Assembly (NCBI GenBank): GCA_040285825.1
Contig: JAUPSS010000002.1
Location: 3,410,001-3,474,000, forward strand
From: Eukaryota sp. TZLM1-RC
Lineage: Eukaryota; Protista; Metamonada: BaSk clade
Reading direction: 5' to 3'
DNA length: 64,000 nucleotides
Part shown: positions 1 through 36,737 of the stretch, one piece after another
Numbering within the stretch: the first letter of the stretch is position 1
Layout of the letters: each line of letters starts with the position of its first letter
Notes under the pieces: generated by a model
The model's input: the letters and a program-made list of their open reading frames with translations, nothing else
Told to the model about the DNA's origin: nothing
Databases searched by the model: none
Program-made: the position numbers and the translations under genes

Positions 1-2634
1 GATTTGCAAAAGCGGGATTCTTTTTCTTGGCCAAGCCAAGTCTAACATCAAAATCCAAGCTTTCAAAAATCTTTGACAATTTTTGTTGAAGCTTTTTACA
101 GCAAAACTGTAAATTAAATAGAGATCGGTTTGGAATTTCTTGAATTGATTGAGGAAAACATTTGGTCCAAATTTGTGGCGGTAATTTTTCAAGTTCACAA
201 GCTAACTCATACAAATAGGGACTACAATTGGGGACTAACAGATAGAATCATCAGGAAATCTACGAGAAAATTCATAAATAAAATTTTGCCACCACCCAAG
301 AATGCTGATTGACACAAAATTGAAGATTTAGTAAAACCAATACCACCCAAATTTGCTGAAGAAAATAAATGGCTTTTCAACATTCCTGGTTCTACATCCA
401 ATAAATCAGCAAAAAATTCTGTTCTCAATGAATTAAAAGAACGACAAAAATCTAATGCTATGGAAGGAGCACAAGATCTCAAAATGTGGGTTATTCTCCC
501 AGTGTAGCAAATTTTAAGCATGAAAAATTAAATATGCTTTTCTATATCTAAAGAAGAAATTGAATCAAGTTCAATTTTCATTTTTTCCATAATAACTTGC
601 AATTCATTCTGAATTTGAGGCACATTTCCTAACCAACAACCAAGGAACTTAAAAGCATCACTACTATAATTAGTAAAAGGGACAATAGAATCGTTTATCA
701 CGAGGTCTTGAGCAGAAGAGCCAATCAGAAGGCATTTGCTGGCATTAAGATGAAGCCCAATATTTTCATATGAATCGGCAATTTCTTGAGCAACCAATTC
801 TAGTAAATCAAATGAACCAATCAAGGATATATCATCCATATAAGCAACTATTTTTATAGAAGGGTATTTTTGCTTAATGATATTTAAAGTTTTGTGAATA
901 GCTAAACAAAACAATAATGGACCTAAAGGATCACCTTGCTTCACTCCAGAAGATGATTTAAGACCAAATGAATTAAAAATTAAATCTGATTCTTTCCCAT
1001 AAAAATGGTAGAAAAAACTCGATAGCTCAGGAAAATCAGATTTAATAACTTCAAAAATTGCATCTCGCTTTACAGAATTAAAAGCATTTTTAAAGTCGAG
1101 ATTAAAAATAAAATTATTTTCATCTGCATTAAAAAAGGTATCAGAGGCAATAGCAGCAACAGAAGCACCATCAATTGTTTTGATTCCAAATTGATGAGGA
1201 TTCAAAAATGTAGAAGCTTTGTCTTTGACACGATCGAAGACAATTGATGCTAGCAAACGAGAAAGAGATTCATCAACAGCAATTGGGCGTATTCCATCAG
1301 GTTTGATTCCGTTTCCAGGCTTTACTAAAGCAATCAGACGTGCTGCGAGTAATTCAAATGGAGGATTAATTTTCAAAACAATCAATTGTTGAAAATAGTG
1401 GGCTAGATCATCAGCAATTTCGGGAGCACTGGAACACGCTATTTTTAACAGATCAAAAGAAATTCCAGATGGGCCTGCTGCTTTCCCCTTTGGCAATTTT
1501 TGAATAGGTTTAAAAACTTCAATTGCAGTAATAGGATTTTCAATCCAAAAAGGACACACTTCAGGCTTGCTGCACTTGAAATTTTCTTGAGGATGCAACT
1601 TTTGAAGTTTTTCAAGGGTATCAGAGTTTGCATCAGCCAAAGAAGAGGAAAACAAAGACTGCTTTGCGGCACCATAACGACCACGTAAGCACAATTTACG
1701 GCAAATTTTTGATTTTACAATTTTTCTATTTCCAAATTTTTTCTTAAAACAATTTTTGTTTTTTCTAGCAAAATATTTCCAGAAGGATGAAATATTCCAC
1801 TTATTATTTTTCAATTCAGAAGTAAAATTTCTCATTTCCATTGAGAAGGGGATTGTGCTGGCGGGACTTATTTCTACTGGGATCCGGATCGGGGGTCTTA
1901 CGGTATCAACGGCTTTACAATTCGTACAAAACAGAAGTTTTCGACCATTTCTTGAATCTGCAACATCTTTTTTGCAAAATGGACAACAAAAATTACTGTT
2001 TTCAGAAGGGGAAGAAGAGGGAACACTAGAAGCATTTAACTGTTGATCGTCAGAAACATTATTTTCAGCACCTTTCACAACGGCAACAGCTGGAACAGAA
2101 CATTCGAGAATTTGTTGAGCAGATTTTAATTCAAATTCTCTTTTTTGCTTTTCAGGGCACGTTCTCGAATTATGACCACTGGTACCACAAATCGAACATT
2201 TTTTAGAACCTTTTAATGGCATTGGTTTCATTTTTTCAGTTCTTTCAATTTTGTTAATTTGTGAGTTAAAAGTAGAAATAGACTTTTGACTTTTTGCAGT
2301 TTCAGCTGGAGAAAACAAATTTCGAGAAACGGAGTTGTTAATAGAACGTAAGGAACGTAATGGTGGTTTTTGTGTGTTTTTTCTGGTACAATGATCAGTT
2401 TTTGAATGAAAATTTTTTTGAGATGAATTTCGAGCATAGCTTGTATTGTGGGGAGAGTGGGGAAGTGGAGAGGATGAGCTTGATCTGACTGGTAGAATCT
2501 TTGCTTGGGCGTTCCAATCAGTATCAGAGTCACTATCAGCCAAAGGCATCGTTTTGACAGAGAAACAGTACGACTTTGACGCCTTGACAGAAAGTGAAAT
2601 ATGAAAGGGTTGACTAAGGGAGGGAGAAAAAAAA
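1..2634 (-). mobile_element. Family A RLE non-LTR retrotransposon, intact 5' end (T8-CTCCCTCCC), 3' part runs out of window; frameshift near 528
   Basis: ORF from ATG 2549 (MPLADSDSDTDW) with CSICGTSGHNSRTC knuckle and RT motifs GVKQGDPLGP/AYMDD; near-identical to the intact copy at 20655-24139. Confidence 0.93.
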
Positions 2635-2802
2635 TACAATCCTGTTTTGCCAGTAAACACGATTGAAAATTCTTCCAGTGCTTTCCTTTACAACTACAAC
2701 AAAATCTTCAAGGAAAGCCATAGCAGCCTTACCTAGAGATCCAAGCAAAGAAAAAACAAATGGACATAAATTATATTGGGCATGAGAATTTTCATTAACC
2801 GA
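2635..2802 (-). mobile_element. Family B 3' fragment (RLE end)
   Basis: Encodes SVNENSHAQYNLCPFVFSLLG...NRIV, matching the B C-terminus in 10133-11476. Confidence 0.85.
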
Positions 2803-5686
2803 CGCAGGGGTAATTAAATCAGCACGGCGTTTCCCAAAAGTATTTTCATCTTCATTTTCAGATGACAATCTTCGCACAAGTGGTTCACCAAAAGCTTCGA
2901 TGTGATGACTTTTGCACATTGCGTATAGTTGGTCTCTAACAGCATCGTGAACAACTGAGCGATATGTAATATTAAATTTACAATTAAATAAATGATTCAG
3001 ATTAATGAGCTGACCACAACGACAAATCAAATCATTTGGCACACTACATGGCCACAGAAAACATCTCATCCTGAATGCAGTTGTCCATTGATGATCATTT
3101 AATAATAGACCATATACTTTTGGAATCTGGGAAATAAGACAACTTGAGCTACTATCCTTGAGGTCAATTAAAAAGTTTGCAAAAACGGGATTCTTTTCTT
3201 TAGCCAAGCTAAGACGAACAGTGAAATCCAAGTTTTCAAAAACTTTTAATACCTTTTGTAATTTAGCATATGCAAATTTCAAGGAAATCAAACTCCTGGG
3301 TGGAATTTCTTGAATATCAGCAGGAAAGCATTTGGACCATATGTGAGGAAAGATGCATTCAATTTCACTCTGCAAGGACACTAAATAGTCACTAACACAA
3401 CATTCTATTAAATGCTGGTTTTCAGGAAAGCGTTTCAAAAATTCAAAAACGAAATGTTTTCCTCCACCGATGAATGCGGCTTTACACAAATATTTTGATT
3501 TGTGAAAATCCAGGCCTCCCAATTCTGTGCTACAAAAAATATGACTACGTAAAAAAGAAGAATCAATATCGAGCAAATTAGCCAAAAATTTTGTTCTTAA
3601 TTCATTAAAAATTCTGCAAAATTCGAGAGAAATAGATGGTGATGTTGATCGTAAAATATGAGTAAATTTCCCTGAATAACAAATTTTGAGGAAGAAAAAT
3701 TAAGATGTTTTTCAATATTTAAATCTGAAAGAACCATCAATTCTTCTTCAAAATTATCCAAAAGGGAGGAAAGTTGATTTCGAATGTCATCAAAATTGCC
3801 TAAATAACAACCTCAAAAACGAAATCCTGATTCAAAATATTTGATAAAAGGAACACTTTGATCATCAATAATGAGATCAGCAGGCTCTCGACCAATCAAT
3901 AAACATTTGGGAATATTTAGAGAAAGACCAATTTCATAATAGCGCTGTTGAACAATTTCAGCAATTGTTCTCAATGAATCAATTGGACCAATTATTGATA
4001 TGTCATCCATATAAGCGGTTAAATGAACATCTGGAAATTCTTGTTTTAATTCACACATCAAAGGATGGATTGCAAGGCAGAAAAAGAAAGGACCTAATGG
4101 ATCACCTTGTTTGACACCAGATGATGATATTAGATTGAATTCCTCATAAACAAGAGTCGACTGCGAGCCATAAAAATTGTAAAAGAACGACTCAGCTTCT
4201 GGAAAATGAGCTTGAAGCAAGGGCAAGATGGACGACCTCTTCACTGCATTGAAAGCGTTTTTAAAATCTAAATTAAAAATATAATTCGAAGTATTGGAAT
4301 TAAAAAAGACATCAAAAGAGAGTGCTGCAGAAGATGCACCATCAACTGTTTTAATTCCAAATTGGAAAGGACTAAAAAAATCTTTAGCTTTTTTACCAAT
4401 CCTGCCAAACACAGCTGAAGCAAGAATACGAGACAAAGATTCACCAATTGCAATAGGCCTTATTTTTGATTCATTCTTTTTTAAAACAATTAAGCGTGAA
4501 CTTGTCATTTCAGATGGAAGCTTGATTTTTAATGTTAAAATTTTGTTGAAAAAGAAAACCAAATCATCAATACATTCAGGACATTGGTTTATCGTGGATT
4601 TTATCATGTCAAAAGTGATCATTGATGGACCAGGCGCTTTTCCAGATGGTAAGTGGTTAATCAATTTAATTAGTTCATCATTAGTTATGGGATTTTGCTC
4701 CCAATAACTTACATAATTAGGTTTAGGGCACTTAAAATTTTCAACAGGATGGAGACTCTTTAGTTGAGCAATAGTGTTTTCATTACATTCTGCAAGTTCA
4801 GAGGAAAACAGGCATTGCTTAGCGGATCCGTAGCGTCCCTTTAAAGCTAATTTTCGAACAATTTTTTTCTTTCTTAATTACTGAAGGACAATAATTTTTT
4901 ACTGACAATAATTTTTTTATCTTTAAGCAGAAAAATTTCCATATCGGTGTTACATCCCATATGCCTTTTTTTAAATTGGTAGTAAATTTTCGAAAACTAA
5001 TTGAAAAGGGGATGCAAGAAAGAGGACTTACCTGTGATGGAACACGTATTGGAGGCCTCAAGGAATCAACAGCTTTACATGATTCGCAAAAACGTAATGG
5101 TCGGCCAGAAGAATTAATGCCCAAATTTTTTTTAAAATTTAATTTTATTCTAAACCTATAAATCAACATCTAAAAAATCCATCTCTCCCAAAACAAAAAC
5201 ACTAGATGCAACTCTCTCATAGTGAGATCCAAGAGAAAGCAAAGCATCAGAAACCATCTTCAACATCCCCTTAAAAATAGAAAACACAATTCTATTTTGC
5301 CAAAACAATCTGTTGAAATTTCTGCCAGTTCTTCTCATTACAATCAATTCAAAATCATCCAAAAAACGTAAAGCAGTTGGTGCAAATTTTTGGTACAAAA
5401 TATACACTTATTATTCGGAGAATCAATGGATAAATTTACAGGTACTATTGCTGGTATTTCTTGATCATCATTATCATCATTTATGGGTAACGATGAGAGG
5501 GATTGTTTCAAATCAGCAGATGCAGCACGAGCTTTTAATTGTTCTTGTTTTATTTGGGGACATGTTTTAACGTTATGTCCCGGTTGACGACATTTACCAT
5601 AACTCTGAGAAGGAACTTTTCCAGTTTTTAATGGTAATGGTGTTATTTTTTCAGTTATTTCTATTTTGTCAATTGGTGAGTTAAAA
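2803..5686 (-). mobile_element. Family C RLE retrotransposon, degenerate, interrupted by an A 3' fragment
   Basis: ORFs 5344-5748 (knuckle KCRQPGHNVKTC), 4819-5169, 3813-4664 (RT, AYMDD), 2614-3585 (CRC..H..C, HDAVRD, RRAD). Confidence 0.88.
5126..5385 (-). mobile_element. Family A 5'-truncated insertion (~260 bp) with A-tail
   Basis: Encodes ...MDFLDVDL*, followed by the AATAAAATTAAATTTT(A)n tail; CAAATTTTT is duplicated on both sides. Confidence 0.85.
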
Positions 5687-7013: not shown

Positions 7014-8596
7014 ATCTTAATGCCAGCAAATGCCTTCTGATTGGCTCTTCTGCTCAAGACCTCGTGATAAACGATTCTATTGTCCCTTTTACTAATTATA
7101 GTAGTGATGCTTTTAAGTTCCTTGGTTGTTGGTTAGGAAATGTGCCTCAAATTCAGAATGAATTGCAAGTTATTTTGGAAAAAATGAAAATTGAACTTGA
7201 TTCAATTTCTTCTTTAGATATAGAAAAGCATATTAAATTTTTCATGCTTAAAATTTGCTACACTGGGAGAATAACCCACATTTTGAGATCTTGTGCTCCT
7301 TCCATAGCATTAGATTTTTGTCGTTCTTTTAATTCATTGAGAACAGAATTTTTTGCTGATTTATTGGATGTAGAACCAGGAATGTTGAAAAGCCATTTAT
7401 TTTCTTCAGCAAATTTGGGTGGTATTGGTTTTACTAAATCTTCAATTTTGTGTCAATCAGCATTCTTAGGTGGTGGCAAAAATTTTATTTATGAATTTTC
7501 TCGTAGATTTCCTGATGATTCTCATCTGTTAGTCCCCAATTGTAGTCCCTATTTGTATGAGTTATCTTGTGAACTTGAAAAATTACCGCCACAAATTTGG
7601 ACCAAATGTTTTCCTGAATCAATTCAAGAAATTCCAAACCGATCTCTATTTAATTTACAGTTTTGCTGTGAAAAGCTTCAACAAAAATTGTCAAAGATTT
7701 TTGAAAGCTTGGATTTTGATGTTAGACTTGGCTTGGCCAAGAAAAAGAATCCCGCTTTAGCAAATCTTTTACAAGATATGTGTGACAGTACTTCCTCTGC
7801 CTTAGTAACAACAATTCCACAAGTTTATGGTACTCTCTTATCCGATTCTGCTTGGACTCTGAATATGAGATTTCGTTCCTTTATCTGGCCTGATAATTTA
7901 CCTCATAATTTAATTTGTTTTCGAGAAATTACAACTACTCATTTGTTAAATTGTAAACATTTTATTACTTTTAGAAGCAAGGTTCATGATGCTGTAAGAG
8001 ACCAGTTATATTGTATGTGTAGATCTCATAGAATTGAATCCTTCTTGGAACCTTTGTTGTCAAATCTGTTTGATGCTGAAAATGATTTTCATAAGAATAA
8101 TAGAGGTGATGTCATATTACCTGGATTAGATGGAAGCTTCATTTTATTGGATGTAATGTCTGTTGATCCTTGTAATGCCTCAAATGAAAGGGTTGTTAAT
8201 TCTGAAATTCATAATCCCCTTTCAAATGCTGAAAATTTTAAATTCAAAAAATACAATGAACCTTTGTCCAAATTGGCCAGTCTACAGCATGCAAAATACA
8301 ATTTGTATCCATTTGTATTTTCCCTTTTTGGTTCACTTGCACCAGCTGCTTTACGTTTTTTGGATGATTTTGAATTGATTGTAATGAGAAGAACTGGCAG
8401 AAATTTCAACAGATTGTTTTGGCAAAATAGAATTGTGTTTTCTATTTTTAAGGGGATGTTGAAGATGGTTTCTGATGCTTTGCTTTCTCTTGGATCTCAC
8501 TATGAGAGAGTTGCATCTAGTGTTTTTGTTTTGGGAGAGATGGATTTTTTAGATGTTGATTTATAGGTTTAGAATAAAATTAAATTTTAAAAAAAA
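7014..8596 (+). mobile_element. Family A 3' half (post-RT, CCHC, RLE) with tail
   Basis: ORF 7064-8566 ends MDFLDVDL*, followed by the A-tail. Confidence 0.92.
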
Positions 8597-10080
8597 TTTG
8601 GGCATTAATTCTTCTGGCCGACCATTACGTTTTTGCGAATCATGTAAAGCTGTTGATTCCTTGAGGCCTCCAATACGTGTTCCATCACAGGTAAGTCCTC
8701 TTTCTTGCATCCCCTTTTCAATTAGTTTTCGAAAATTTACTACCAATTTAAAAAAAGGCATATGGGATGTAACACCGATATGGAAATTTTTCTGCTTAAA
8801 GATAAAAAATTATTGTCAGTAAAAAAATTATTGTCCTTCAGTAATTAAGAAAGAAAAAATTGTTCGAAAATTAGCTTTAAAGGGACGCTACGGATCCGCT
8901 AAGCAATGCCTGTTTTCCTCTGAACTTGCAGAATGTAATGAAAACACTATTGCTCAACTAAAGAGTCTCCATCCTGTTGAAAATTTTAAGTGCCCTAAAC
9001 CTAATTATGTAAGTTATTGGGAGCAAAATCCCATAACTAATGATGAACTAATTAAATTGATTAACCACTTACCATCTGGAAAAGCGCCTGGTCCATCAAT
9101 GATCACTTTTGACATGATAAAATCCACGATAAACCAATGTCCTGAATGTATTGATGATTTGGTTTTCTTTTTCAACAAAATTTTAACATTAAAAATCAAG
9201 CTTCCATCTGAAATGACAAGTTCACGCTTAATTGTTTTAAAAAAGAATGAATCAAAAATAAGGCCTATTGCAATTGGTGAATCTTTGTCTCGTATTCTTG
9301 CTTCAGCTGTGTTTGGCAGGATTGGTAAAAAAGCTAAAGATTTTTTTAGTCCTTTCCAATTTGGAATTAAAACAGTTGATGGTGCATCTTCTGCAGCACT
9401 CTCTTTTGATGTCTTTTTTAATTCCAATACTTCGAATTATATTTTTAATTTAGATTTTAAAAACGCTTTCAATGCAGTGAAGAGATCGTCCATCTTGCCC
9501 TTGCTTCAAGCTCATTTTCCAGAAGCTGAGTCGTTCTTTTACAATTTTTATGGCTCGCAGTCGACTCTTGTTTATGAGGAATTCAATCTAATATCATCAT
9601 CTGGTGTCAAACAAGGTGATCCATTAGGTCCTTTCTTTTTCTGCCTTGCAATCCATCCTTTGATGTGTGAATTAAAACAAGAATTTCCAGATGTTCATTT
9701 AACCGCTTATATGGATGACATATCAATAATTGGTCCAATTGATTCATTGAGAACAATTGCTGAAATTGTTCAACAGCGCTATTATGAAATTGGTCTTTCT
9801 CTAAATATTCCCAAATGTTTATTGATTGGTCGAGAGCCTGCTGATCTCATTATTGATGATCAAAGTGTTCCTTTTATCAAATATTTTGAATCAGGATTTC
9901 GTTTTTGAGGTTGTTATTTAGGCAATTTTGATGACATTCGAAATCAACTTTCCTCCCTTTTGGATAATTTTGAAGAAGAATTGATGGTTCTTTCAGATTT
10001 AAATATTGAAAAACATCTTAATTTTTCTTCCTCAAAATTTGTTATTCAGGGAAATTTACTCATATTTTACGATCAACATC

Positions 10081-13000
10081 TTTTTTTTTTAAAATATTTA
10101 TTTTTATTCAACAACAAATATGAAATACACAATTAAAACTCCACATCCTCAAAACCTGCCTCCCCTACATCAAAACAATTAATCGCTAAAGATTCAGAAA
10201 ATTTCCCAAAAGAAGATAGTGAATCAGAAATTAGTGTTACCATTCCCTTAAAAATAGAAAATACAATCCTGTTTTGCCAGTAAACACGATTGAAAATTCT
10301 TCCAGTTCTTTCCTTTACAACTACAACAAAATCCTCAAGGAAAGCCATAGCAGCCTTACCTAGAGATCCAAGCAAAGAAAAAACAAATGGACATAAATTA
10401 TATTGGGCATGAGAATTTTCATTAACCGAGGAAATGGGTTTCGCATATTTAGCAATTTTATATTTTTCGCCTGCAAGAAGAGGATTATTTACATCCGAGT
10501 TAATGAAATGTTCGTTAGAGGAATTACAAGGGTCAATAGACATGGCGTCCAAAATAGTAAAACTACCATTTAAACCAGGAACAACTAGATCACCTCTAGT
10601 CAAACCCATAGAAGCTCTGTTGTAACGCGTACTATCAATATTGGGATCATCAAGAATTAATTTTGATAACAGCGGTTCTAAAAAGGAATCTACACGATAT
10701 GATTTGCACATTACATAAATTTGGTCCCTGACGTTATTATGCACTTTGCTTCTATACGTAATGAAATGTTTACAGTTCAAAAGATGAGTAAACAAAAGAG
10801 GTTTACCACATTTACAAGTTAAATGATTGGGCAAATTGTTTGGCCACAGAAAACAACGAAAACGCATGTTTAAAAGCCATTCATTGTCTTTTAGCAAAAG
10901 TCCATAAACAGAGGGAACTTGAGTTACTAAAGCAGCAGCAGAACTATCACGAATATCCTTTAAACAATTACCGAAAGCGGGATTTTTAGTTTTGGCCAAG
11001 CCAAGTCTTACTTCATAATCCAAGCCTTCATATAATTTAACCAGATGGTGCTGAAGCTTTTTCAAGCAAAAACGTAAATTTGGAAGTGATCGAGTGGGAA
11101 TTTCTTGAACGTTTTGAGGAAAACACTGAATCCAGATATCACTAGGCAAATTTTCTAATTCAAATTGCAGTTGATTCAAGTAAAAATTTGATTCACCATT
11201 GAACAGATGAACATCAAAAGGGAACCTTTGGAAAAATTCAAAAACAAAATTTTTACCACCTCCCAAAAATGCTGCTTTACACAGAATCGAAGATTTGGTG
11301 AATCCAATTCCACCCAAATCTGCTGAACAAAATACATGACTTCGAATTAAAGATTCATTTACTTCTAATAAAGAAGAAAAAAATTTGACTCGAAGTTTGT
11401 TAAAAGATCTGCAAAAATTGAGAGATACCGAAGGGGAGTTGACCTTAAAATATGAGTGAATTTTCCAGAATAACAAATTTTTAAAATAAAAAATTTGATG
11501 TGTTTCTCAATGTCACATTCAGCGATAAAACTAAGATCCTTGTCAAACTTCTCCAATTAATTGTTTAACTGGGAATAAATTTCATCCAAATTGCCAAGCC
11601 AACATCCAAGAAACTTAAAAGCTTGTTGGTCATAATTGATAAAAGGAATCTGAGCTCCACCAATCATCAAAGATTGTTTTTCTCTACCAATCAAGAGACA
11701 TTTAGATGGGTTCAAAGCTAAACCAATTTCTTTGTATTTCGCCGCAATGTCTTCAGAAACCCTAGAAATGCTTTCAAAAGAACCAATAATAGAAATGTCA
11801 TCCAAATAGGCAACAATACGCAAATCAGGGAAATCTTGTTGTGTCATTTTAATAATATTATGAATAGCCAAACAAAACAGCAAAGGGCCAAGAGGATCAC
11901 CTTGTTTCACACCAGAAGAAGATTCAAGGGTAAAGGAGTCAAAAATTAATTCTGATTTTTTTCCATAAAATAAATAAAAATATGCAGAAAGTTCAGGAAA
12001 ATCATGAAGAAGCACATCAAAAATACAATCACGTTTCACAGAATTGAAAGCATTTTTGAAATCCAAATTGAAAATATATTGATGTTGTTGACTATTGAAA
12101 AAAACATCTGAAGTCATTGAAGCAACAGAAGCACCTTCAACAGTTTTTATACCAAATTGGAAAGGCTTCAAATAGTCCCTTGCTTCAGTAGAAATTCTGT
12201 TGAAAATAAGTGAAGAAAGCAATCTGGTTAATGACTCTCCAATAGCAATTGGTCTAACTCCATCAGGCCTGTCACCTTTACCAGGTTTAACTAAAGCAAC
12301 TAAACGGGCAGCAGTCAATTCATGCGGAGGAACATAATTCAAACACATTAAATTTTGAAAATAGGAAGCAAGATCCTCACAAATTTCAGGAGCATTTTTA
12401 CAGGCAGTTTTCAACAAATCAAAGGAAATGCCTGAAGGACCAGCAGCTTTTCCTTTTGGTAATTTAGCAACGGCATTCAATACTTCTTGAGCCTGAAATG
12501 GATTTTCGAGCCAATATTGACAAATAGAAGGCCTACTGGGGCAAAAATTTTCAGTTGGATGGAGGAATTTTAATTTTTCAACAGTTTCGAGATTGTTATC
12601 AGCCAGTTTTCCCGAAAAAATATTTTTTAATCCGCTTCCATATCTACCTCTCAAAAACAATTTTCTTGCCTGAAAAGATGAATTAGCTTTTCCCTGTTTT
12701 GGTTTGTAATTAATTTTCTTCTTATTCTTTTTGGCAAAGAATTTCCAAAATCTTGTTATGTTCCATTTGTTTAATTTCAATTGCGAAGAAAAAGAACGCA
12801 TTTCCATTGACAAAGGAACAGAACTGGCAGGACTCACCTCTACAGGAATTTTAACAGGTGTACGAAGAGAATCACTTGTTTGACAGTCATAACAAAACAA
12901 TAGAGGGCGACCATTAGAAGAATTAGAGAGGAACTTTTTGCAAAAAGGACAACTATGTTTCAAGAAATTATCCGTAGGATCAGGAGCAACAGTTTTTGGT

Positions 13001-13497
13001 AAATGAGTTTGATCAATATTTAAATCATAATTAACATCATCAGCAGAAACATTGGGAACAGGAGGAAGATTTAGTTCGGATGGCGTTTGCAAACTATTAA
13101 CAATAGAAATATTGGTTTTCAGTCTCATTTTTTCGGTAACAATATCAGGACATTTTCTAATGTTATGACCAACCTTGCCACATTTGGAACAAGTATATCT
13201 TCTTTTTTGCACTTTTTCAGGCGTAATATCAGGGGCATCACACAAAGGCAAAAAGTCTTTTTTAAAAATTTTCAAATTTTTTTGAGAAGAATTTCGAGCA
13301 TAGCTTGAAGGGTGGGGAGAGTGGAGAAGTGAAGGGGATGAGCTTGATCTGATGGGTAGAATCTTTGCTTGGGTGTTCCAATCAGTATCAGAGTCACTGT
13401 CAGTCACTGGCATCGTTTTGGCAAAGACACAGTACGACTGTGACTCCGTGACAGAAAGTGAAATATGAGAGGGTTGACTAAGGGAGGGAGAAAAAAA
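10081..13497 (-). mobile_element. Family B full-length RLE retrotransposon (~3.4 kb)
   Basis: 5' T-tract followed by CTCCCTCCC; 3' AATAAAAATAAATATTTT(A)10; TSD AACATC at 10075-10080 and 13498-13503. Confidence 0.94.
10133..13413 (-). pseudogene. Family B RT-RLE ORF with one in-frame stop (11557-11559) and one frameshift (~11435)
   Basis: MPVTDSDSDTDW; CSKCGKVGHNIRKC; GVKQGDPLGP, AYLDD; CKC..H..C; TRGDLVV; KYKIAKY; ends FEDVEF*. Confidence 0.88.
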
Positions 13498-14511
13498 AAC
13501 ATCACCATCTATTTCTCTCGAATTTTGCAGAATTTTTAATGAATTAAGAACAAAATTTTTGGCTAATTTGCTCGATATTGATTCTTCTTTTTTACGTAGT
13601 CATATTTTTTGTAGCACAGAATTGGGAGGCCTGGATTTTCACAAATCAAAATATTTGTGTAAAGCCGCATTCATCGGTGGAGGAAAACATTTCGTTTTTG
13701 AATTTTTGAAACGCTTTCCTGAAAACCAGCATTTAATAGAATGTTGTGTTAGTGACTATTTAGTGTCCTTGCAGAGTGAAATTGAATGCATCTTTCCTCA
13801 CATATGGTCCAAATGCTTTCCTGCTGATATTCAAGAAATTCCACCCAGGAGTTTGATTTCCTTGAAATTTGCATATGCTAAATTACAAAAAAGGTATTAA
13901 AAGTTTTTGAAAACTTGGATTTCACTGTTCGTCTTAGCTTGGCTAAAGAAAAGAATCCCGTTTTTGCAAACTTTTTAATTGACCTCAAGGATAGTAGCTC
14001 AAGTTGTCTTATTTCCCAGATTCCAAAAGTATATGGTCTATTATTAAATGATCATCAATGGACAACTGCATTCAGGATGAGATGTTTTCTGTGGCCATGT
14101 AGTGTGCCAAATGATTTGATTTGTCGTTGTGGTCAGCTCATTAATCTGAATCATTTATTTAATTGTAAATTTAATATTACATATCGCTCAGTTGTTCACG
14201 ATGCTGTTAGAGGCCAACTATACGCAATGTGCAAAAGTCATCACATCGAAGCTTTTGGTGAACCACTTGTGCGAAGATTGTCATCTGAAAATGAAGATGA
14301 AAATACTTTTGGGAAACGCCGTGCTGATTTAATTACCCCTGCGTCGGTTAATGAAAATTCTCATCCCCAATATAATTTATGTCCATTTGTTTTTTCTTTG
14401 CTTGGATCTCTAGGTAAGGCTGCTATGGCTTTCCTTGAAGATTTTGTTGTAGTTGTAAAGGAACGCACTGGAAGAATTTTCAATCGTGTTTACTGGCAAA
14501 ACAGGATTGTA

Positions 14512-17500
14512 TTTTTTTTCTCCCTCCCTTAGTCAACCCTTTCATATTTCACTTTCTGTCAAAGCGTCAAAGTCGTACTGTTTCTCTGTCAAAACGATGC
14601 CTTTGGCTGATAGTGACTCTGATACTGATTGGAACGCCCAAGCAAAGATTCTACCAGTCAGATCAAGCTCATCCACTCCACTTCCCCACTCTCCCCACAA
14701 TACAAGCTATGCTCGAAATTCATCTCAAAAAAATTTTCATTCAAAAACTGATCATTGTACCAGAAAAAACACAGAAAAACCACCATTACGTTCCTTGCGT
14801 TCTGTTGCGCGTTCTATTAACAACTCCGTTTCTCGAAATTTGTTTTCTCCAGCTGAAACTGCAAAAAGTCAAAAGTCTATTTCTACTTTTAACTCACAAA
14901 TTAACAAAATTGAAAGAACTGAAAAAATGAAACCAATGCCATTAAAAGGTTTTAAAAAATGTTCGATTTGTGGTACCAGTGGTCATAATTCGAGAACGTG
15001 CCCTGAAAAGCAAAAAAGAGAATTTGAATTAAAATCTGCTCAACAAATTCTCGAATGTTCTGTTCCAGCTGTTGCCGTTGTGAAAGGTGCTGAAAATAAT
15101 GTTTCTGACGATCAACAGTTAAATGCTTCTAGTGTTCCCTCTTCTTCCCCTTCTGAAAACAGTAATTTTTGTTGTCCATTTTGCAAAAAAGATGTTGCAG
15201 ATTCACGAAATGGTCGAAAACTTCTGTTTTGTACGAATTGTAAAGCCGTTGATACCGTAAGACCCCCGATCCGAATCCCAGTAGAAATAAGTCCCGCCAG
15301 CGTAATCCCCTTCTCAATGGAAATGAGAAATTTTACTTCTGAATTGAAAAATAATAAGTGGAATATTTCATCCTTCTGGAAATATTTTGCTAGAAAAAAC
15401 AAAAATTGTTTTAAGAAAAAATTTGGAAATAGAAAAATTGTAAAATCAAAAATTTGCCGAAAATTGTGCTTACGTGGTCGTTATGGTGCCGCAAAGCAGT
15501 CTTTGTTTTCCTCTTCTTTGGCTGATGCAAACTCTGATACCCTTGAAAAACTTCAAAAGTTGCATCCTCAAGAAAATTTCAAGTGCAGCAAGCCTGAAGT
15601 GTGTCCTTTTTGGATTGAAAATCCTATTACTGCAATTGAAGTTTTTAAACCTATTCAAAAATTGCCAAAGGGGAAAGCAGCAGGCCCATCTGGAATTTCT
15701 TTTGATCTGTTAAAAATAGCGTGTTCCAGTGCTCCCGAAATTGCTGATGATCTAGCCCACTATTTTCAACAATTGATTGTTTTGAAAATTAATCCTCCAT
15801 TTGAATTACTCGCAGCACGTCTGATTGCTTTAGTAAAGCCTGGAAACGGAATCAAACCTGATGGAATAAAATTTTTGAATAAAATTAAATTTAAAAAAAA
15901 CCTGATGGAATACGCCCAATTGCTGTTGGTGAATCTCTTTCTCGTTTGCTGGCATCAATTGTCTTCGATCGTGTCAAAGACAAAGCTTCTACATTTTTAA
16001 ATCCTCATCAATTTGGAATCAAAACAATTGATGGTGCTTCTGTTGCTGCTATTGCCTCTGATACCGATTTTAATGCAGAGGAAAATAATTTTATTTTTAA
16101 TCTCGACTTTAAAAATGCTTTTAATTCTGTAAAGCGAGAAGCAATTTTTGAAGTTATTAAATCTGATTTTCCTGAGCTATCGAGTTTTTTCTACCATTTT
16201 TATGGGAAAGAATCAGATTTAATTTTTAATTCATTTGGTCTTAAATCATCTTCTGGAGTGAAGCAGGGAGATCCTTTAGGCCCATTATTGTTTTGTTTAG
16301 CTATTCACAAAACTTAAATTAAGCAAAAATACCCTTCTATAAAAATAGTTGCTTATATGGATGATATATCCTTGATTGGTTCATTTGATTTACTAGAATT
16401 GGTTGCTCAAGAAATTACCGATTCATATGAAAATATTGGGCTTCATCTTAATGCCAGCAAATGCCTTCTGATTGGCTCTTCTGCTCAAGACCTCGTGATA
16501 AACGATTCTATTGCCCCTTTTACTAATTATAGTAGTGATGCTTTTAAGTTCCTTGGTTGTTGGTTAGGAAATGTGCCTCAAATTCAGAATGAATTGCAAG
16601 TTATTTTGGAAAAAATGAAAATTGAACTTGATTCAATTTCTTCTTTAGATATAGAAAAGCATATTAAATTTTTCTTGCTTAAAATTTGCTACACTGGGAG
16701 AATAACCCACATTTTGAGATCTTGTGCTCCTTCCATAGCACTAGATTTTTGTCGTTCTTTTAATTCATTGAGAACAGAATTTTTGCTGATTTATTGGATG
16801 TGGAACCTGGAATGTTGAAAAATCACTTATTTTCTTCAGCAGATTTGGGTGGTATTGGTTTTACTAAATCTTCAATTTTGTGTCAATCAGCATTCTTAGG
16901 TGGTGGCAAAAATTTTATTTATGAATTTTCTCGTAGATTTCCTGATGATTCTCATCTGTTAGTCCCCAATTGTAGTCCCTATTTGTATGAGTTATCTTGT
17001 GAACTTGAAAAATTACCGCCACAAATTTGGACCAAATGTTTTCCTCAATCAATTCAAGAAATTCCAAACCGATCTCTATTTAATTTACAGTTTTGCTGTG
17101 AAAAGCTTCAACAAAAATTGTCAAAGATTTTTGAAAGCTTGGATTTTGATGTTAGACTTGGCTTGGCCAAGAAAAAGAATCCCGCTTTTGCAAATCTTTT
17201 ACAAGATATGTGTGGCAGTACTTCTTCTGCCTTAGTAACAACAATTCCCCAAGTTTATGGCACTCTCTTAACTGATTCTGCTTGGACTTTGAATATGAGA
17301 TTTCGTTCCTTTATCTGGTCTGATAATTTACCTCATAATTTATTTTGTAAATGTTCTCGAAAAATTACAACTACTTTTGTTGAATTGTAAACATTTTATT
17401 ACTTTTAGAAGCAAGGTTCATGATGCTGTAAGAGACCAGTTATATTGTATGTGTAAATCTCATAGAATTCAATCCTTCTTGGAACCTTTGTTGTCAAGTC

Positions 17501-18011
17501 TGTTTGATGCTGAAGATGATTTTCATATGAATAACCTGGATTAGATGGAAAGTTCATTTTATTGGATGTAATGTCTGTTGATCCTTGTAATGCCTCAAAT
17601 GAAAGGCTAGTTAATTCTGAAATTCATAATCCCCTTTCAAATGCTGAAAATTTTAAATTCAAAAAATACAATGAACCTTTGTCCAAATTGGCCAGTCTAC
17701 AGCATGCAAAATACAATTTGTATCCATTTGTATTTTCCCTTTTTGGTTCACTTGCACCAACTGCTTTACGTTTTTTGGATGATTTTGAAATGATTGTAAA
17801 GAGAAGAACTGGCAGAAATTTCAACAGATTGTTTTGGCAAAATAGAATTGTGTTTTCTATTTTTAAGGGGATGTTGAAGATGGTTTCTGATGCTTTGCTT
17901 TCTCTTGGATCTCACTATGAGAGAGTTGCATCTAGTGTTTTTGTTTTGGGAGAGATGGATTTTTTAGATGTTGATTTATAGGTTTAGAATAAAATTAAAT
18001 TTTAAAAAAAA
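14512..18011 (+). mobile_element. Family A full-length, disrupted copy
   Basis: T8 5' end, ATG at 14597, ORF pieces 14486-16000, 15946-16317, 16357-16818, 16794-17390 and 17562-17981, then the A-tail. Confidence 0.92.
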
Positions 18012-18420: not shown

Positions 18421-18624
18421 TGTGACAGTACTTCCTCTGCCTTAGTAACAACAATTCCACAAGTTTATGGTACTCTCTTATCCGATTCTGCTTGGACTCT
18501 GAATATGAGATTTCGTTCCTTTATCTGGCCTGATAATTTACCTCATAATTTAATTTGTAAATGTTTTCGAGAAATTACAACTACTCATTTGTTAAATTGT
18601 AAACATTTTATTACTTTTAGAAGC
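18418..18624 (+). mobile_element. Family A fragment hosting the D insertion (continues at 25390-25493)
   Basis: MCDSTSS...FITFRS is cut at AGAAGC and resumes as KVHDAVRD at about 25395. Confidence 0.85.
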
Positions 18625-20654
18625 TTTTTTTTTAAAAACTGGAATATTTATTGAGATAAAAATAACCATCTAGAATTCAATATCCTCCAAACAAGCGTCA
18701 CTATTACTGAACCTACTCACAGCATTACGTTCATATTCTACACCAATAGCTAAAAGTGCCTTTGAAATCATTGTTGGAATAGACTTGAAAATGCAAAAAA
18801 CAATTCTATTTAACCAGAAGGTGGAGTTCATTGTTTTACCAGACCTATTCAGTAACACTTTTTTAAAATTTTCCAAAAAGTGCAAGCCTGAAGGTCCAAT
18901 ATTGCCAAAAAGAGAAATTGCAAACGGCACAAACTGATATTTCACATGTTCCACTCTACCTAACTGTGCCAAAGGTTCTTCATATTTTTTATCTTCTTTT
19001 TTTCGGCGTTAGATAACGGCGAGTCAGCGGAATACACTAAACGAGCAGCAGAATTTTTGCAAACATCCACTGAGACAACGTCTACAACATTGAGAACACC
19101 ATCGATCCCTGGAGCTACTAAATCTGCCCTTCTTTTACCAAAGGAATCATCAGTTTGATCTGAAGACAGCTTACGTACTAGTGGCTCAATAAATGCCTCT
19201 ATATTGAAACTTTTGCACATGGCATATAATTGATCACGAACTGAGTCATGAACAAGTGAGCGATAAGTTATGAAATACTTACAGTTTAAAATATGGGAAA
19301 GCGTAACAACACTCTTGCAGCGACAAATTAAATCATTTGGCAATGAGCAAGGCCATAGAAAACATCTCAATCTCATTGCAGTGGTCCATTGGTGATCATT
19401 AAGTATAAGGCCGTAAATGTTGGGAATTTGGGAGATTAAGCAACTTGAGCAACTGTCTTCAAGATCAATCAAAAAGTTTGCAAAAACGGGATTTTTTTCC
19501 TTAGCCAAGCTAAGACGTACAATATAATCCAAGTTTTCTAAAACTTTCAAAATTTTTTCTGCAATTTTGCAAAAGTCAATGGTAAGGAGAGCAAGCTTCT
19601 TGAAGGAAGTTCCACAATATCAGAGGGGAAACATTTAGCCCAAATATTGGGTGAAAGAGTTTCAATTTCCTGTTGCAAAGAAATAAGATAGGAGCTGCCA
19701 CAATTTTCAATGAGATGAATTTTTTCAGGAAAACGATTCACAAATTCATAAATAAAATTCTTTCCACCTCCAATAAAGGCAGCTTTACAAAGGTAGCTTG
19801 ACTTATGAAAATCAACACCACCAAAATTTGTACCACAAAAAATGTGGCTTCGTAACTGAGATGCATCAATTTCCAATAATTTTGCTAAAAAATTAGTTCT
19901 TTGTTCATTAAAAATGCGACAGAACTCCAAGGAAATTGATGGTGATGTTGATCTTAAAATATGAGTAAATTTTCCAGAATAACAGATTTTGAGGAAAAAG
20001 AATTTCAAATGTTTCTCAATATTTAAATTTTCTAATGATTCTAATTCATTTCCAAATTGAGTCAACAGAGTCGAAAGTTGGCTTTTCACTTCATCAATAT
20101 TTCCGAGATAACAACCCAAAAAACGAAAACCAGACTGATCATAATTGATAAAGGGGACATTTACATCATTAATGAAAAAATCAATTGGTTCATGGCCAAT
20201 AATCAAACATTTGGAGATATTCAATGAGAGACCAATATCTTCATAACGCTGTTGAATAAAAGTTGCTATTTGTTTCAGAATTGTAATAGGAGCAATTACA
20301 GAAATGTCATCCATATATGCTACAATATCTATTTCTGGGAATTTTTCTTTCAATTCGCACATTAATGGATGAATTGCCAGACAAAAGAAAAAAGGACCAA
20401 GTGGATCACCTTGTTTAACACCTGAAGACGAAAGCAGGTCAAAATTTTCATAGACCAATGTGGATGATTTTCCATAAAATGAATAGAAAAAAGGCTCAAC
20501 TTCAGGAAAATGCTTTTGCAGCAAAGGTAAAATGGAAGAACGAGATACAGAATTGAAAGCATTCTTAAAATCTAAATTGAAGATGTAATTAGAATCACTA
20601 GAATTAAAAAACACATCCGACGAAAGAGCAGCAGAAGAAGCACCATCAATTGTC

Positions 20655-23600
20655 TTTTTTTTTAAAATTTAATTTTATTCTAAACCTATAAATCAACATC
20701 TAAAAAATCCATCTCTCCCAAAACAAAAACACTAGATGCAACTCTCTCATAGTGAGATCCAAGAGAAAGCAAAGCATCAGAAACCATCTTCAACATCCCC
20801 TTAAAAATAGAAAACACAATTCTATTTTGCCAAAACAATCTGTTGAAATTTCTGCCAGTTCTTCTCTTTACAATCATTTCAAAATCATCCAAAAAACGTA
20901 AAGCAGTTGGTGCAAGTGAACCAAAAAGGGAAAATACAAATGGATACAAATTGTATTTTGCATGCTGTAGACTGGCCAATTTGGACAAAGGTTCATTGTA
21001 TTTTTTGAATTTAAAATTTTCAGCATTTGAAAGGGGATTATGAATTTCAGAATTAACAAGCCTTTCATTTGAGGCATTACAAGGATCAACAGACATTACA
21101 TCCAATAAAATGAAGCTTCCATCTAATCCAGGTAATATGACATCACCTCTATTATTCTTATGAAAATCATTTTCAGCATCAAACAGATTTGACAACAAAG
21201 GTTCCAAGAAGGATTCAATTCTATGAGATTTACACATACAATATAACTGGTCTCTTACAGCATCATGAACCTTGCTTCTAAAAGTAATAAAATGTTTACA
21301 ATTTAACAAATGAGTAGTTGTAATTTCTCGAGAACATTTACAAATTAAATTATGAGGTAAATTATCAGGCCAGATAAAGGAACGAAATTTCATATTCAGA
21401 GTCCAAGCAGAATCGGATAAGAGAGTACCATAAACTTGTGGAATTGTTGTTACTAAGGCAGAAGAAGTACTGTCACACATATCTTGTAAAAGATTTGCTA
21501 AAGCGGGATTCTTTTTCTTGGCCAAGCCAAGTCTAACATCAAAATCCAAGCTTTCAAAAATCTTTGACAATTTTTGTTGAAGCTTTTTACAGCAAAACTG
21601 TAAATTAAATAGAGATCGGTTTGGAATATCTTGAATTGATTGAGGAAAACATTTGGTCCAAATTTGTGGCGGTAATTTTTCAAGTTCACAAGATAACTCA
21701 TACAAATAGGGACTACAATTGGGGACTAACAGATGGGAATCATCAGGAAATCTACGAGAAAATTCATAAATAAAATTTTTGCCACCACCCAAGAATGCTG
21801 ATTGACACAAAATTGAAGATTTAGTAAATCCAATACCCCCCAAATTTGCTGAAGAAAATAAATGGCTTTTCAACATTCCTGGTTCTACATCCAATAAATC
21901 AGCAAAAAATTCTGTTCTCAATGAATTAAAAGAACGACAAAAATCTAATGCTATGGAAGGAGCACAAGATCTCAAAATGTGGGTTATTCTTCCAGTGTAG
22001 CAAATTTTAAGCATGAAAAATTTAATATGCTTTTCTATATCTAAAGAAGAAATTGAATCAAGTTCAATTTTCATTTTTTCCAAAATACCTTGCAATTCAT
22101 TCTGAATTTGAGGCACATTTCCTAACCAACAACCAAGGAACTTAAAAGCATCACTACTATCATTAGTAAAAGGGACAATAGAATCGTTTATCACGAGGTC
22201 TTGAGCAGAAGAGCCAATCAGAAGGCATTTGCTGGCATTAAGATGAAGCCCAATATTTTCATATGAACCGGCAATTTCTTGAGCAACCAATTCTAGTAAA
22301 TCAAATGAACCAATCAAGGATATATCATCCATATAAGCAACTATTTTTATAGAAGGGTATTTTTGCTTAATGATATTTAAAGTTTTGTGAATAGCTAAAC
22401 AAAACAATAATGGGCCTAAAGGATCTCCCTGCTTCACTCCAGAAGATGATTTAAGACCAAATGAATTAAAAATTAAATCTGATTCTTTCCCATAAAAATG
22501 GTAGAAAAAACTCGATAGCTCAGGAAAATCAGATTTAATAACTTCAAAAATTGCTTCTCGCTTTACAGAATTAAAAGCATTTTTAAAGTCGAGATTAAAA
22601 ATAAAATTATTTTCCTCTGCATTAAAAAAGGTATCAGAGGCAATAGCAGCAACAGAAGCACCATCAATTGTTTTGATTCCAAATTGATGAGGATTCAAAA
22701 ATGTATAAGCTTTGTCTTTGACACGATCGAAGACAATTGATGCTAGCAAACGAGAAAGAGATTCACCAACAGCAATTGGGCGTATTCCATCAGGTTTGAT
22801 TCCGTTTCCAGGCTTTACTAAAGCAATCAGACGTGCTGCGAGTAATTCAAATGGAGGATTAATTTTCAAAACAATCAATTGTTGAAAATAGTGGGCTAGA
22901 TCATCAGCAATTTCGGGAGCACTGGAACATGCTATTTTTAAGAGATCAAAAGAAATTCCAGATGGGCCTGCTGCTTTCCCCTTTGGCAATTTCTGAATAG
23001 CTTTAAGAACTTCAATTGCAGTAATAGGATTTTCAATCCAAAAAGGACACACTTCAGGCTTGCTGCACTTGAAATTTTCTTGAGGATGCAACTTTTGAAG
23101 TTTTTCAAGGGTATCAGAGTTTGCATCAGCCAAAGAAGAGGAAAACAAAGACTGCTTTGCGGCACCATAACGACCACGTAAGCACAATTTACGGCAAATT
23201 TTTGATTTTACAATTTTTCTATTTCCAAATTTTTTCTTAAAACAATTTTTGTTTTTTCTAGCAAAATATTTCCAGAAGGATGAAATATTCCACTTATTAT
23301 TTTTCAATTCAGAAGTAAAATTTCTCATTTCCATTGAGAAGGGGATTGTGCTGGCGGGACTTATTTCTACTGGGATCCGGATCGGGGGTCTTACGGTATC
23401 AACGGCTTTACAATTCGTACAAAACAGAAGTTTTCGACCATTTCGTGAATCTGCAACATCTTTTTTGCAAAATGGACAACAAAAATTACTGTTTTCAGAA
23501 GGGGAAGAAGAGGGAACACTAGAAGCATTTAACTGTTGATCGTCAGAAACATTATTTTCAGCACCTTTCACAACGGCAACAGCTGGAACAGAACATTTGA

Positions 23601-24139
23601 GAATTTGTTGAGCAGATTTTAATTCAAATTCTCTTTTTTGTTTCTCAGGGCACGTTCTTGAGTTATGACCACTGATACCACAAATCGAACATTTTTTAGA
23701 ACCTTTTAATGGCAGTTGTTTCATTTTTTCAGTTCTTTCAATTTTGTCAATTTTTGAGTTAAAAGTAGAAATAGACTTTTGACTTTTTGCAGTTTCAGCT
23801 GGAGAAAACAAATTTCGAGAAACGGAGTTGTTAATAGAACGCGCAACAGAACGCAAGGAACGTAATGGTGGTTTTTCTGTGTTTTTTCTGGTACAATGAT
23901 CAGTTTTTGAATGAAAATTTTTTTGAGATGAATTTCGAGCATAGCTTGTATTGTGGGGAGAGTGGGGAAGTGGAGTGGATGAGCTTGATCTGACTGGTAG
24001 AATCTTTGCTTGGGCGTTCCAATCAGTATCAGAGTCACTATCAGCCAAAGCCATCGTTTTGACAGAGAAACAGTACGACTTTGACGCCTTGACAGAAAGT
24101 GAAATATGAAAGGGTTGACTAAGGGAGGGAGAAAAGAAA
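20655..24139 (-). mobile_element. Family A full-length intact element (~3.48 kb)
   Basis: 5' TTTCTTTTCTCCCTCCC, 3' A-tail, TSD ATCAATTGTC(TT) at 20645 and 24140. Confidence 0.96.
20686..24054 (-). CDS. Single-ORF non-LTR retrotransposon protein (1122 aa): zinc knuckle, C4 finger, reverse transcriptase, CCHC, restriction-like endonuclease
   Basis: Uninterrupted ORF with KAAGPSG, IRPIAVGE, LDFKNAFN, GVKQGDPLGP, YMDD, FLG; CKC-x7-H-x3-C, HDAVRD, EP, RGD..LDV, KFKKY. The upstream 78 codons in the ORF track are read-through from flank and 5' UTR. Confidence 0.95.
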   Translation of the reverse strand: MALADSDSDTDWNAQAKILPVRSSSSTPLPHSPHNTSYARNSSQKNFHSKTDHCTRKNTEKPPLRSLRSVARSINNSVSRNLFSPAETAKSQKSISTFNSKIDKIERTEKMKQLPLKGSKKCSICGISGHNSRTCPEKQKREFELKSAQQILKCSVPAVAVVKGAENNVSDDQQLNASSVPSSSPSENSNFCCPFCKKDVADSRNGRKLLFCTNCKAVDTVRPPIRIPVEISPASTIPFSMEMRNFTSELKNNKWNISSFWKYFARKNKNCFKKKFGNRKIVKSKICRKLCLRGRYGAAKQSLFSSSLADANSDTLEKLQKLHPQENFKCSKPEVCPFWIENPITAIEVLKAIQKLPKGKAAGPSGISFDLLKIACSSAPEIADDLAHYFQQLIVLKINPPFELLAARLIALVKPGNGIKPDGIRPIAVGESLSRLLASIVFDRVKDKAYTFLNPHQFGIKTIDGASVAAIASDTFFNAEENNFIFNLDFKNAFNSVKREAIFEVIKSDFPELSSFFYHFYGKESDLIFNSFGLKSSSGVKQGDPLGPLLFCLAIHKTLNIIKQKYPSIKIVAYMDDISLIGSFDLLELVAQEIAGSYENIGLHLNASKCLLIGSSAQDLVINDSIVPFTNDSSDAFKFLGCWLGNVPQIQNELQGILEKMKIELDSISSLDIEKHIKFFMLKICYTGRITHILRSCAPSIALDFCRSFNSLRTEFFADLLDVEPGMLKSHLFSSANLGGIGFTKSSILCQSAFLGGGKNFIYEFSRRFPDDSHLLVPNCSPYLYELSCELEKLPPQIWTKCFPQSIQDIPNRSLFNLQFCCKKLQQKLSKIFESLDFDVRLGLAKKKNPALANLLQDMCDSTSSALVTTIPQVYGTLLSDSAWTLNMKFRSFIWPDNLPHNLICKCSREITTTHLLNCKHFITFRSKVHDAVRDQLYCMCKSHRIESFLEPLLSNLFDAENDFHKNNRGDVILPGLDGSFILLDVMSVDPCNASNERLVNSEIHNPLSNAENFKFKKYNEPLSKLASLQHAKYNLYPFVFSLFGSLAPTALRFLDDFEMIVKRRTGRNFNRLFWQNRIVFSIFKGMLKMVSDALLSLGSHYERVASSVFVLGEMDFLDVDL

Positions 24140-30718: not shown

Positions 30719-30940
30719 GCTTCAACAAAAATTGTCAAAGATTTTTGAAAGCTTGGATTTTGATGTTAGACTTGGCTTGGCCAAGAAAAAGAATCCCGCT
30801 TTTGCAAATCTTTTACAAGATATGTGTGACAGTACTTCTTCTGCCTTAGTAACAACAATTCCACAAGTTTATGGTACTCTCTTATCTCTTATGATAATTT
30901 ACCTCATAATTTAATTTGTAAATGTTCTCGAGAAATTACA

Positions 30941-36160: not shown

Positions 36161-36219
36161 CCTCTGATATTGTGGAACTTCCTTCAAGAAGCTTGCTCTC
36201 CTTACCATTGACTTTTGCA

Positions 36220-36737
36220 TTTTTTTTCTCCCTCCATGCTTATCTATGCCTCCAAAGTCAGTTACTTCAAAACCTTCTAGAGGACGCCCTAAGAATTCTG
36301 TGACTACCTGTTCTTTGTGCAAAACTGTTGGTCACACAAAAACAACATGTCCTCGGCGAAAAGTTTTGTCAGATGAAGCTGAATTGGCATCATTATCTTC
36401 ACCTATTGAGTCTATTGAGCCTCCACATGTACTTCATTCGTCTTCAGTCAGTAGTAATACAAAATCATGTTTGTTCTGTTGTTCTCCAGTTTCTGGATTC
36501 AATGTTTCGGGTCGACCTCTTTTGGTTTGTGATTCTTGCACGCCAATTGATCCTTGTAGACCTCCATTTGCAATCCCTCAAATAATTCGTTTCTCCTGCT
36601 CATTCGTCTTCTCTTGCAACAGTTATTCGATCTTTAACCTTCTCTCTTCGAAAGGGCATTTGGAATCCTTCGATTTTTTGGAAATTTTTTCTTTCTAAGG
36701 CTATGTCTTCACACAAGAAATCTAAATATAAGAAGTA
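36220..36737 (+). mobile_element. Family F 5' end fragment
   Basis: T8-CTCCCTCC 5' end; ORF from 36246 MPPKSVT... with CSLCKTVGHTKTTC, CLFC..GRPLLVCDSC and RPP motif. Confidence 0.8.

Follow-up and report, generated by a model that had tools for sequence, protein, structure and literature searches.

An oligo-T run accompanies the complete 5' ends of retrotransposons in the metamonad Skoliomonas litria

The window analysed in this study is a stretch of 64,000 nucleotides (nt) from the genome of Skoliomonas litria (Eukaryota sp. TZLM1-RC), a free-living anaerobic metamonad (assembly GCA_040285825.1, contig JAUPSS010000002.1, positions 3,410,001 to 3,474,000; G+C content 33%). The window is a dense nest of elements of about 3.3-3.5 kb, which belong to several families (here A, B, D, E and F), and the DNA identity between the bodies of the families is about 65%. 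We focused on element B at 10081-13499 and on the short run of T residues with which this and the other complete elements begin. The Skoliomonas genomes are Nanopore assemblies corrected with Illumina reads, and the paper that describes them reports poly(A)-selected RNA-seq and contains no analysis of retrotransposons (PMC11316075). In the limited library searched, nothing was found on Skoliomonas transposons.

The single protein encoded by each element carries CCHC knuckles at its N-terminus, besides an RVT_1 domain. The open reading frame (ORF) of element B contains zinc knuckles, a reverse transcriptase (RT), a CCHC motif and a restriction-like endonuclease (RLE), and its frame is broken in this copy. 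The longest ORF of the window (20686-24138, minus strand) has near-identical proteins only in TZLM1-RC and relatives in the sister Skoliomonas species TZLM3-RCL and GEM-RC1. RVT_1 matches in A, B, D and other copies have E-values of 1e-22 to 5e-31; the RT is of the type found in retrotransposons that lack long terminal repeats (non-LTR retrotransposons), and its best solved relatives are R2 proteins. A family profile of 13 members aligns to the R2 structure 9nl3_A (E = 2e-42) across the RT, the C..C..H..C knuckle and the PD-(D/E)xK endonuclease. The endonuclease motifs (RxD, DV..D and K..KY) lie C-terminal to the RT, can be aligned with those of R2 and are visible in the translations of A and E. 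No Exo_endo_phos match, and hence no apurinic/apyrimidinic endonuclease (APE) domain, was found in any ORF of the window. The elements were assigned to the RLE-type non-LTR retrotransposons because the RT-CCHC-endonuclease profile aligns with R2 and the APE domain is absent. Their insertions show the pattern of target-primed reverse transcription: 21 have target-site duplications (TSDs) of 4-18 bp, 14 of these are 5'-truncated, and the 3' end is defined. No target consensus, T-rich or otherwise, was found across 20 TSDs; the insertions lie in many unrelated sequences, mostly in other elements.

Judged from their sequences, the elements are autonomous RLE-type (R2-like) non-LTR retrotransposons without a fixed target. 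Like R2, R4, NeSL, CRE/SLACS, Utopia and the Giardia elements GilM and GilT, they have a single ORF with the order RT-CCHC-PD-(D/E)xK, lack an APE domain and insert by target priming with TSDs. Unlike these relatives, most of the Skoliomonas families carry a canonical AATAAA with a short A tail, together with the conserved 5' oligo-T, and none has a fixed target, whereas most RLE elements are described as site-specific (PMC4640811). They do not belong to the R2 clade in the strict sense, since they have no specificity for the 28S rRNA gene and carry N-terminal CCHC knuckles in place of the C2H2/Myb motifs of R2. Nor do they belong to the L1-like poly(A)-dependent class, in which an APE nicks TTTT/AA-like sites and the primer anneals to a long poly(A) tail, since the APE domain is absent, the targets have no T-rich consensus, the tails are mostly 8-10 A's and family E has no A tail.

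Full-length 5' ends were counted in the window and in five further S. litria loci, and only ends with different flanks were regarded as independent. All 17 independent ends, from at least seven families, start with a run of 7-10 T's, followed by C and then by pyrimidines. The first-pass annotation of this DNA had claimed an oligo-T start for every intact 5' end, and the runs that it listed for A, B, D, E and F are all present where it placed them, each followed by C and a pyrimidine tract. Its range of T8-10 was too narrow, since the runs extend from T7 to T10 as read from the Illumina-corrected Nanopore assembly (PMC11316075), in which exact homopolymer lengths inside repeats are uncertain. 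In the orientation of the element, the run is followed by CTCCCTCCCTT in A as in B, by CTCACTCAC in D, by CTTCCTCTAC in E, and by CTCCCTCC with an immediate ATG in F. Without exception the run gives way to a C, and in 7 of 9 families the sequence across the junction is T-C-T. The 5' module of A and B is preceded by the run in 11/11 occurrences, with an invariant junction between the run and the first C. Homopolymer runs of at least 8 are below expectation and not enriched in the window (39 against 61 expected from a first-order Markov model); the non-random feature is the placement of the runs, not their number.

Two further observations concern these 5' ends. The first 226 bp of A and B are about 90% identical, as compared with about 66% for the bodies (13274-13499, 23915-24140 and others), which suggests an exchange of 5' modules between the families. 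At another locus (L001 7649-11672), a copy of A is tandemly duplicated with about 260 bp of flank, and its two 5' runs differ (T7 and T9); this reflects either fast change of the run or the uncertainty of assembled lengths. A T7 inside the element of locus L007 was rejected as a 5' run because it is coding sequence.

The 5' run of T7-10 belongs to the inserted DNA and not to the target sequence. Readable TSDs enclose the run in seven cases. In the window these are CATC (B), GAAGC (D), TCAATTGTC (A) and ATAAGAATAA (E), in agreement with the first-pass annotation, which had placed the run inside the duplications of these four elements; elsewhere they are TTTAGCCACA at a B-like element, GAAAATCTTGTG plus a TA filler at a copy of E, and TTTTTACTGA at an element of Skoliomonas sp. 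RCL. The fillers between TSD and run in the E copies are TATTAC (6 bases) and TA. Element B occupies one arm of a large inverted duplication, and the other arm retains its empty site with flanks that are 100% identical: CATC, present twice around the insertion, occurs there once, and both the T-run and the A-run are absent. The empty sites of D and E are represented by the family A reference, and that of the B-like element by other copies of its host family. None of the 4 empty sites examined carries a T-run (0/4), an outcome opposite to the one that the first-pass annotation had named as fatal to its claim. No shared motif was found in the flanks upstream of the insertions. Since empty sites lack the run, TSDs lie outside it and upstream flanks have no motif, the run arrives with the element.

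These results bear on the alternative that the run stems from the target, the element having inserted beside T or A runs, or that it is a product of chance or an assembly artefact. The window is AT-rich, its runs of at least 8 are not over-represented and host TTTT is present at the 14512 junction, all of which such an explanation could use. However, the four empty sites, the position of the TSDs and the unremarkable upstream flanks contradict it, and the same feature appears in the assemblies of two species. We regard this explanation as scarcely credible.

The inverted segmental duplication itself extends over 1-5385 and 8337-18011 of the window, with a spacer of about 3 kb, and B is present in one arm only. 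A second palindromic structure lies at about 33823-39372. A copy of A and a 2.5-kb B-like element occupy the same position, TTTAGCCACA, of a minus-strand fragment of another family (regions 51243-51436 of the window and L006 9741-9925), and the left flanks are unrelated; a shared hot spot or a copied composite could account for this pair.

Table 1. Retrotransposon features of the window. Positions are those of the whole 64,000-nt stretch; numbers after "from" are positions within the family.
Feature	Position	Strand	Description
Element B, complete insertion	10081-13499	-	3419 bp; T9, pyrimidine leader, ORF, AATAAA, TTTT, A10; both ends set by the empty site
B, 5' run	13491-13499	-	T9, then CTCCCTCCCTT
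B, 3' tail	10081-10090	-	A10
B, TSD	10077-10080 (left), 13500-13503 (right)		CATC
B, empty site	3641-3644		Single CATC with neither T-run nor A-run; identity of the flanks 100/100 and 101/101
Element A, reference copy	20655-24140	-	3486 bp; intact 1150-aa ORF; nested in D
A reference, 5' run	24132-24140	-	TTTTCTTTT, interrupted
A reference, 3' tail	20655-20663	-	A9
A in D, TSD	20646-20654, 24141-24149		TCAATTGTC
Element D	18625-25390	-	3280 bp without the nested A
D, 5' run	25382-25390	-	T9
D, 3' tail	18625-18633	-	A9
D, TSD	18620-18624, 25391-25395		GAAGC; empty site is family A positions 2862-2867
Second D copy	34181-36160	-	Internally deleted; 5' T9 at 36152-36160
Element E	41040-46258	-	Two B fragments nested in an element of about 3.35 kb; 5' run T9 (46250-46258)
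E, TSD	41030-41039, 46265-46274		ATAAGAATAA; 6 filler bases at 46259-46264; E sits in A
E, 3' end	in 41040-46258	-	AATAAATTAT; no A tail
F, 5' run	36220-36227	+	T8, then CTCCCTCC and ATG
A copy	14512-18011	+	5' T8 at 14512-14519
A, 5' run	2627-2634	-	T8; inverted-duplicate counterpart of the 14512 run, not independent
A copy	51429-55532	+	5' TTTC plus T8 at 51425-51436; adjoins a minus-strand fragment of another family
A, 5'-truncated, from 1529	47070-49035	+	TSD TTTATC plus 5-nt microhomology; no 5' T-run; 3' T9A10 variant
B, 5'-truncated, from 2523	44352-45247	+	TSD GACTTACCACGA; 8-nt mixed filler; no T-run
D, 5'-truncated, from 1272	37005-39014	+	TSD TATGGA; no T-run
Micro-insertion, 36 bp	15865-15900	+	28 nt of 3' end plus A8; TSD CCTGATGG; no T-run
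Micro-insertion, 24 bp	50454-50477	+	Lies in a B copy; A8 preceded by 16 nt of a 3' end; TSD 8-9 bp; no T-run

The T-run accompanies the complete 5' end of the element. Among the 14 5'-truncated insertions with clean TSDs (6-18 bp), 13 lack the T-run; what their 5' junctions show is either microhomology (at most 5 nt) or a short filler of mixed sequence. With the counts as entered (17/17 full-length versus 1/12 truncated), the difference was significant by Fisher's test (p = 3e-7), and the truncated count was later 1/14. The statement of the first-pass annotation that most truncated copies lack the run therefore stands, and the converse that it had put forward as a refutation, equal frequency in truncated copies, was not observed. 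Empty sites and truncated copies also agree with its inference that the tract, as part of the element, goes with an intact 5' end. The two micro-insertions, which retain only 28 and 16 nt of the 3' end in front of A8 and have TSDs of 8-9 bp, are products of reverse transcription that was aborted almost at once.

It has also to be considered that the run is copied from the poly(A) tail by a top-strand nick, in a manner resembling twin priming, followed by a switch to the cDNA, which would give the same measured length at both ends. The symmetry of the 5' and 3' run lengths accords with this. However, such priming predicts the run to be equally frequent in truncated and full-length copies, yet 13 of 14 truncated ones lack it, and in family E there is no A tail to copy. 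The sole structure resembling twin priming, at locus L005, was rejected as such because it is a plain nested insertion. Such priming is thus highly improbable.

The 3' ends of most families consist of AATAAA, a few bases, often T2-11, and then A8-10; one tail is A15. Family E differs in this respect. Its 3' ends, seen in at least six copies (41040-46258, 30940-31850, 57936-59213 and 39670-39800 in the window, and also at loci L010 and L011), stop just after AATAAAT in short, variable, A/T-rich non-A tails and never in an A tail, while its 5' ends carry T9-10 in 3/3 cases. The protein architecture of family E is the same as that of the others, and by its design the family is autonomous. The universal T...A form claimed for these elements by the first-pass annotation is not general, because family E has the T-run without the A tail.

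The same annotation had suggested that the U-tract and the A tail pair with each other, either circularizing the RNA or annealing the cDNA ends, which would serve second-strand priming or head-to-tail jumps. In A, B and D the T-run at the 5' end and the A-run at the 3' end are of similar apparent length, which speaks for this, although equal lengths may partly reflect the homopolymer limits of Nanopore assemblies and A tails can reach 15. Head-to-tail chimeras also exist. At 55532/55533, a full-length A (51429-55532) that ends in T8A9 is directly followed by a copy of A from position 199 (window 55524-55533), the arrangement expected if the enzyme had jumped from one template to the 3' end of a second RNA. 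On the other hand, family E dispenses with the A tail, complementarity between the element ends stops at the homopolymers, and the predicted duplexes of the terminal 40 nt (-3.8 to -5.8 kcal/mol) fall, in the case of A, B and E, inside the range given by shuffled controls and, for D, are only slightly better than these. Pairing of the two ends is therefore disfavoured, and we consider it improbable.

Several 3' structures were recorded in addition. A subfamily of A ends in TTAA-T8-9-A9-10 instead of AAATTTT-A8 in three independent insertions (49017-49035, 55516-55532 and L011 16727-16743), and T's followed by A's likewise close elements of RCL (T11A9), of family X (T7A8-9) and of a metagenomic relative (T5A8). 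A B/A fusion similar to the chimera at 55532/55533 lies at 59938/59939. Positions 1952-2557 of family A form a 606-bp in-frame tandem array at 26383-30114, and the same junction is present in a second copy at 53994; the A8 at the junctions of this array was rejected as a tail because it represents microhomology between A5 and A3 of the parent sequence.

Our preferred reading, in which belief and doubt are about balanced, is that the T-run is encoded in the element and forms the very start of its RNA, which would begin with oligo(U) followed by a C-led pyrimidine leader. The run would be copied in each cycle like the remaining sequence and kept by selection in every family. Encoding is supported by the tight length of 7-10, by the unvarying junction between the run and the first C and by the strictness with which the run is tied to complete 5' ends, as well as by the stability of a templated T8-9/A9-10 variant at the 3' end through the three insertions of the A subfamily. 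Support also comes from other genomes. Two families of Skoliomonas sp. RCL keep the run (in one of them, T8 lies 7 nt before the ATG), and the contig of a distant relative, L009, starts at T7 and ends its element with a (GAC)n tail. The RCL element at locus L004 has an interrupted T-rich leader of 26 nt within a perfect 10-bp TSD. Because the interrupted leader sits in a perfect TSD, the interruptions seem to be inherited rather than acquired after insertion; a search for a second copy of this family returned no close paralogue. At the single locus of the third species, GEM-RC1, there was no recognizable intact 5' end.

What the run does is a matter of speculation, which its membership of the inserted unit is not. 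Its likeliest role would be to define and protect the 5' end. A polypyrimidine start region of the T-C-T type could direct transcription from the boundary of the element whatever lies upstream. As a homopolymer, the run might serve as a buffer: starts could be imprecise or copying incomplete without harm, and slippage could lengthen the run again. It is also possible that it is a binding signal for the element protein, by analogy with the 5' RNA of R2. A scan of both strands of element B against Rfam (E <= 1) detected neither a ribozyme nor any other family, the one match being snoRNA-like and due to chance, and there is no sign in the sequence of an R2-style self-cleaving 5' end.

Several observations weigh against an encoded start. 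An interruption of the run common to two independent copies would prove templating, and none was found among the 17. The presence of the run in families whose leaders cannot be aligned would follow automatically if it were made by an enzyme. A severely truncated E, a fragment of 126 nt at another locus (L001 12785-12935), lies inside a 14-bp TSD and shows AAA plus T10 at the 5' junction; E sequence has no AAA plus T10 at that point, and no other 5' sequence is present. The metagenomic relative L002 starts without a T-run, its pyrimidine-rich start being directly preceded by A125 (L002 1-125), an arrangement that would fit a head-to-tail array; L002 and L009 are both distant, with 23-26% protein identity. 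Finally, no T-run was found within 90-100 nt of the ATG in 14 host genes of two species, as judged from predicted gene-model starts.

These points lead to a serious rival, which the first-pass annotation had not considered although its core (a tract inside the element, tied to the intact 5' end) was correct. The RNA might start at the conserved C, and the RT, on running off its end, might add about nine untemplated A's to the cDNA, which become the T-run of the second strand. The run would then be made at integration, either as a by-product or as a means of restoring the pyrimidine context upstream of the start at each new site. This would explain, with no need for selection, why the run is found in every family whatever its leader and is absent from host genes. 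It would also account for the run of family E, which has no A tail, for the truncated E fragment described above and for the fillers between TSD and run in the E copies, and the constant C after the run, with T-C-T in most families, is expected for a start at C. Untemplated addition of bases on reaching the end of a template is indeed a property of R2-type enzymes. To our knowledge, however, they add only a few bases and not a measured nine. The length of the run is very tight for untemplated synthesis, 13/14 truncated insertions lack the run and the fillers are mixed rather than T-rich, and the interrupted T-rich leader at L004 lies within a perfect TSD. We consider synthesis of the run at integration rather unlikely, and somewhat more doubtful still the specific proposal that the RT of this clade tails its completed cDNA with a measured stretch of about nine dA, placing a fresh T-run upstream of the C start and so rebuilding its own start region.

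Comparison with known systems gives partial parallels for both readings. Untemplated addition and template jumping by the R2 RT, and the extra 5' G of full-length L1, resemble the present case in that the 5' junction gains extra bases only if the enzyme has copied the RNA to its end. The additions of the R2 RT are a few mixed bases and that of L1 is one G, unlike the uniform run of about nine bases in every Skoliomonas family. In the Drosophila long interspersed nuclear elements (LINEs) jockey, Doc, F and I, divergent families likewise have one short motif in common, placed exactly at the 5' end, since the start is set from inside the element; their initiator and downstream promoter element motifs are also used by host genes, unlike the Skoliomonas motif, a homopolymer not seen at host genes.

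The terminal oligopyrimidine (TOP) and TCT initiators of animal ribosomal-protein genes have the same order of T, C and pyrimidine run, and a motif of this type is present at the element 5' ends, where T-C-T spans the start presumed from the sequence in 7/9 families. In those genes, however, the RNA starts at C and the upstream T's are not transcribed, whereas in Skoliomonas the T's lie inside the transposed unit and the sampled host genes lack a T-run. Highly expressed host genes have C/T-rich leaders like that of the element. The TOP-like or initiator start suggested by the first-pass annotation is thus plausible as far as the T-C-T motif is concerned, but the run is not a general feature of core promoters, because the 14 host genes have no T-run before the ATG.

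RLE-type non-LTR retrotransposons are a known kind of element, and the conserved 5' oligo-T is a new feature of them. In the limited library searched, no description of a 5' oligo-T or of another conserved 5' homopolymer in non-LTR elements was found, and we know of no other retrotransposon group with a conserved 5' homopolymer. An RLE-type element without site specificity is itself uncommon.

Non-LTR retrotransposons must rebuild an exact 5' end and their transcribability at each new site, and of all the steps in their cycle the attachment of the 5' end is understood least. The results presented here indicate that a whole clade of elements, in a deep-branching and barely studied eukaryote, marks this end with a homopolymer, which is carried along when the element moves. 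If the RNA starts with oligo(U), this would be an unusual start and possibly a buffer for the end of the element. If the enzyme adds the run, this would be a new activity of an R2-like RT, a class of enzymes that is now engineered for gene insertion. Tailing with dA, if true, would represent a new enzyme activity of eukaryotic retrotransposons as well as a new answer to the missing upstream promoter of LINEs.

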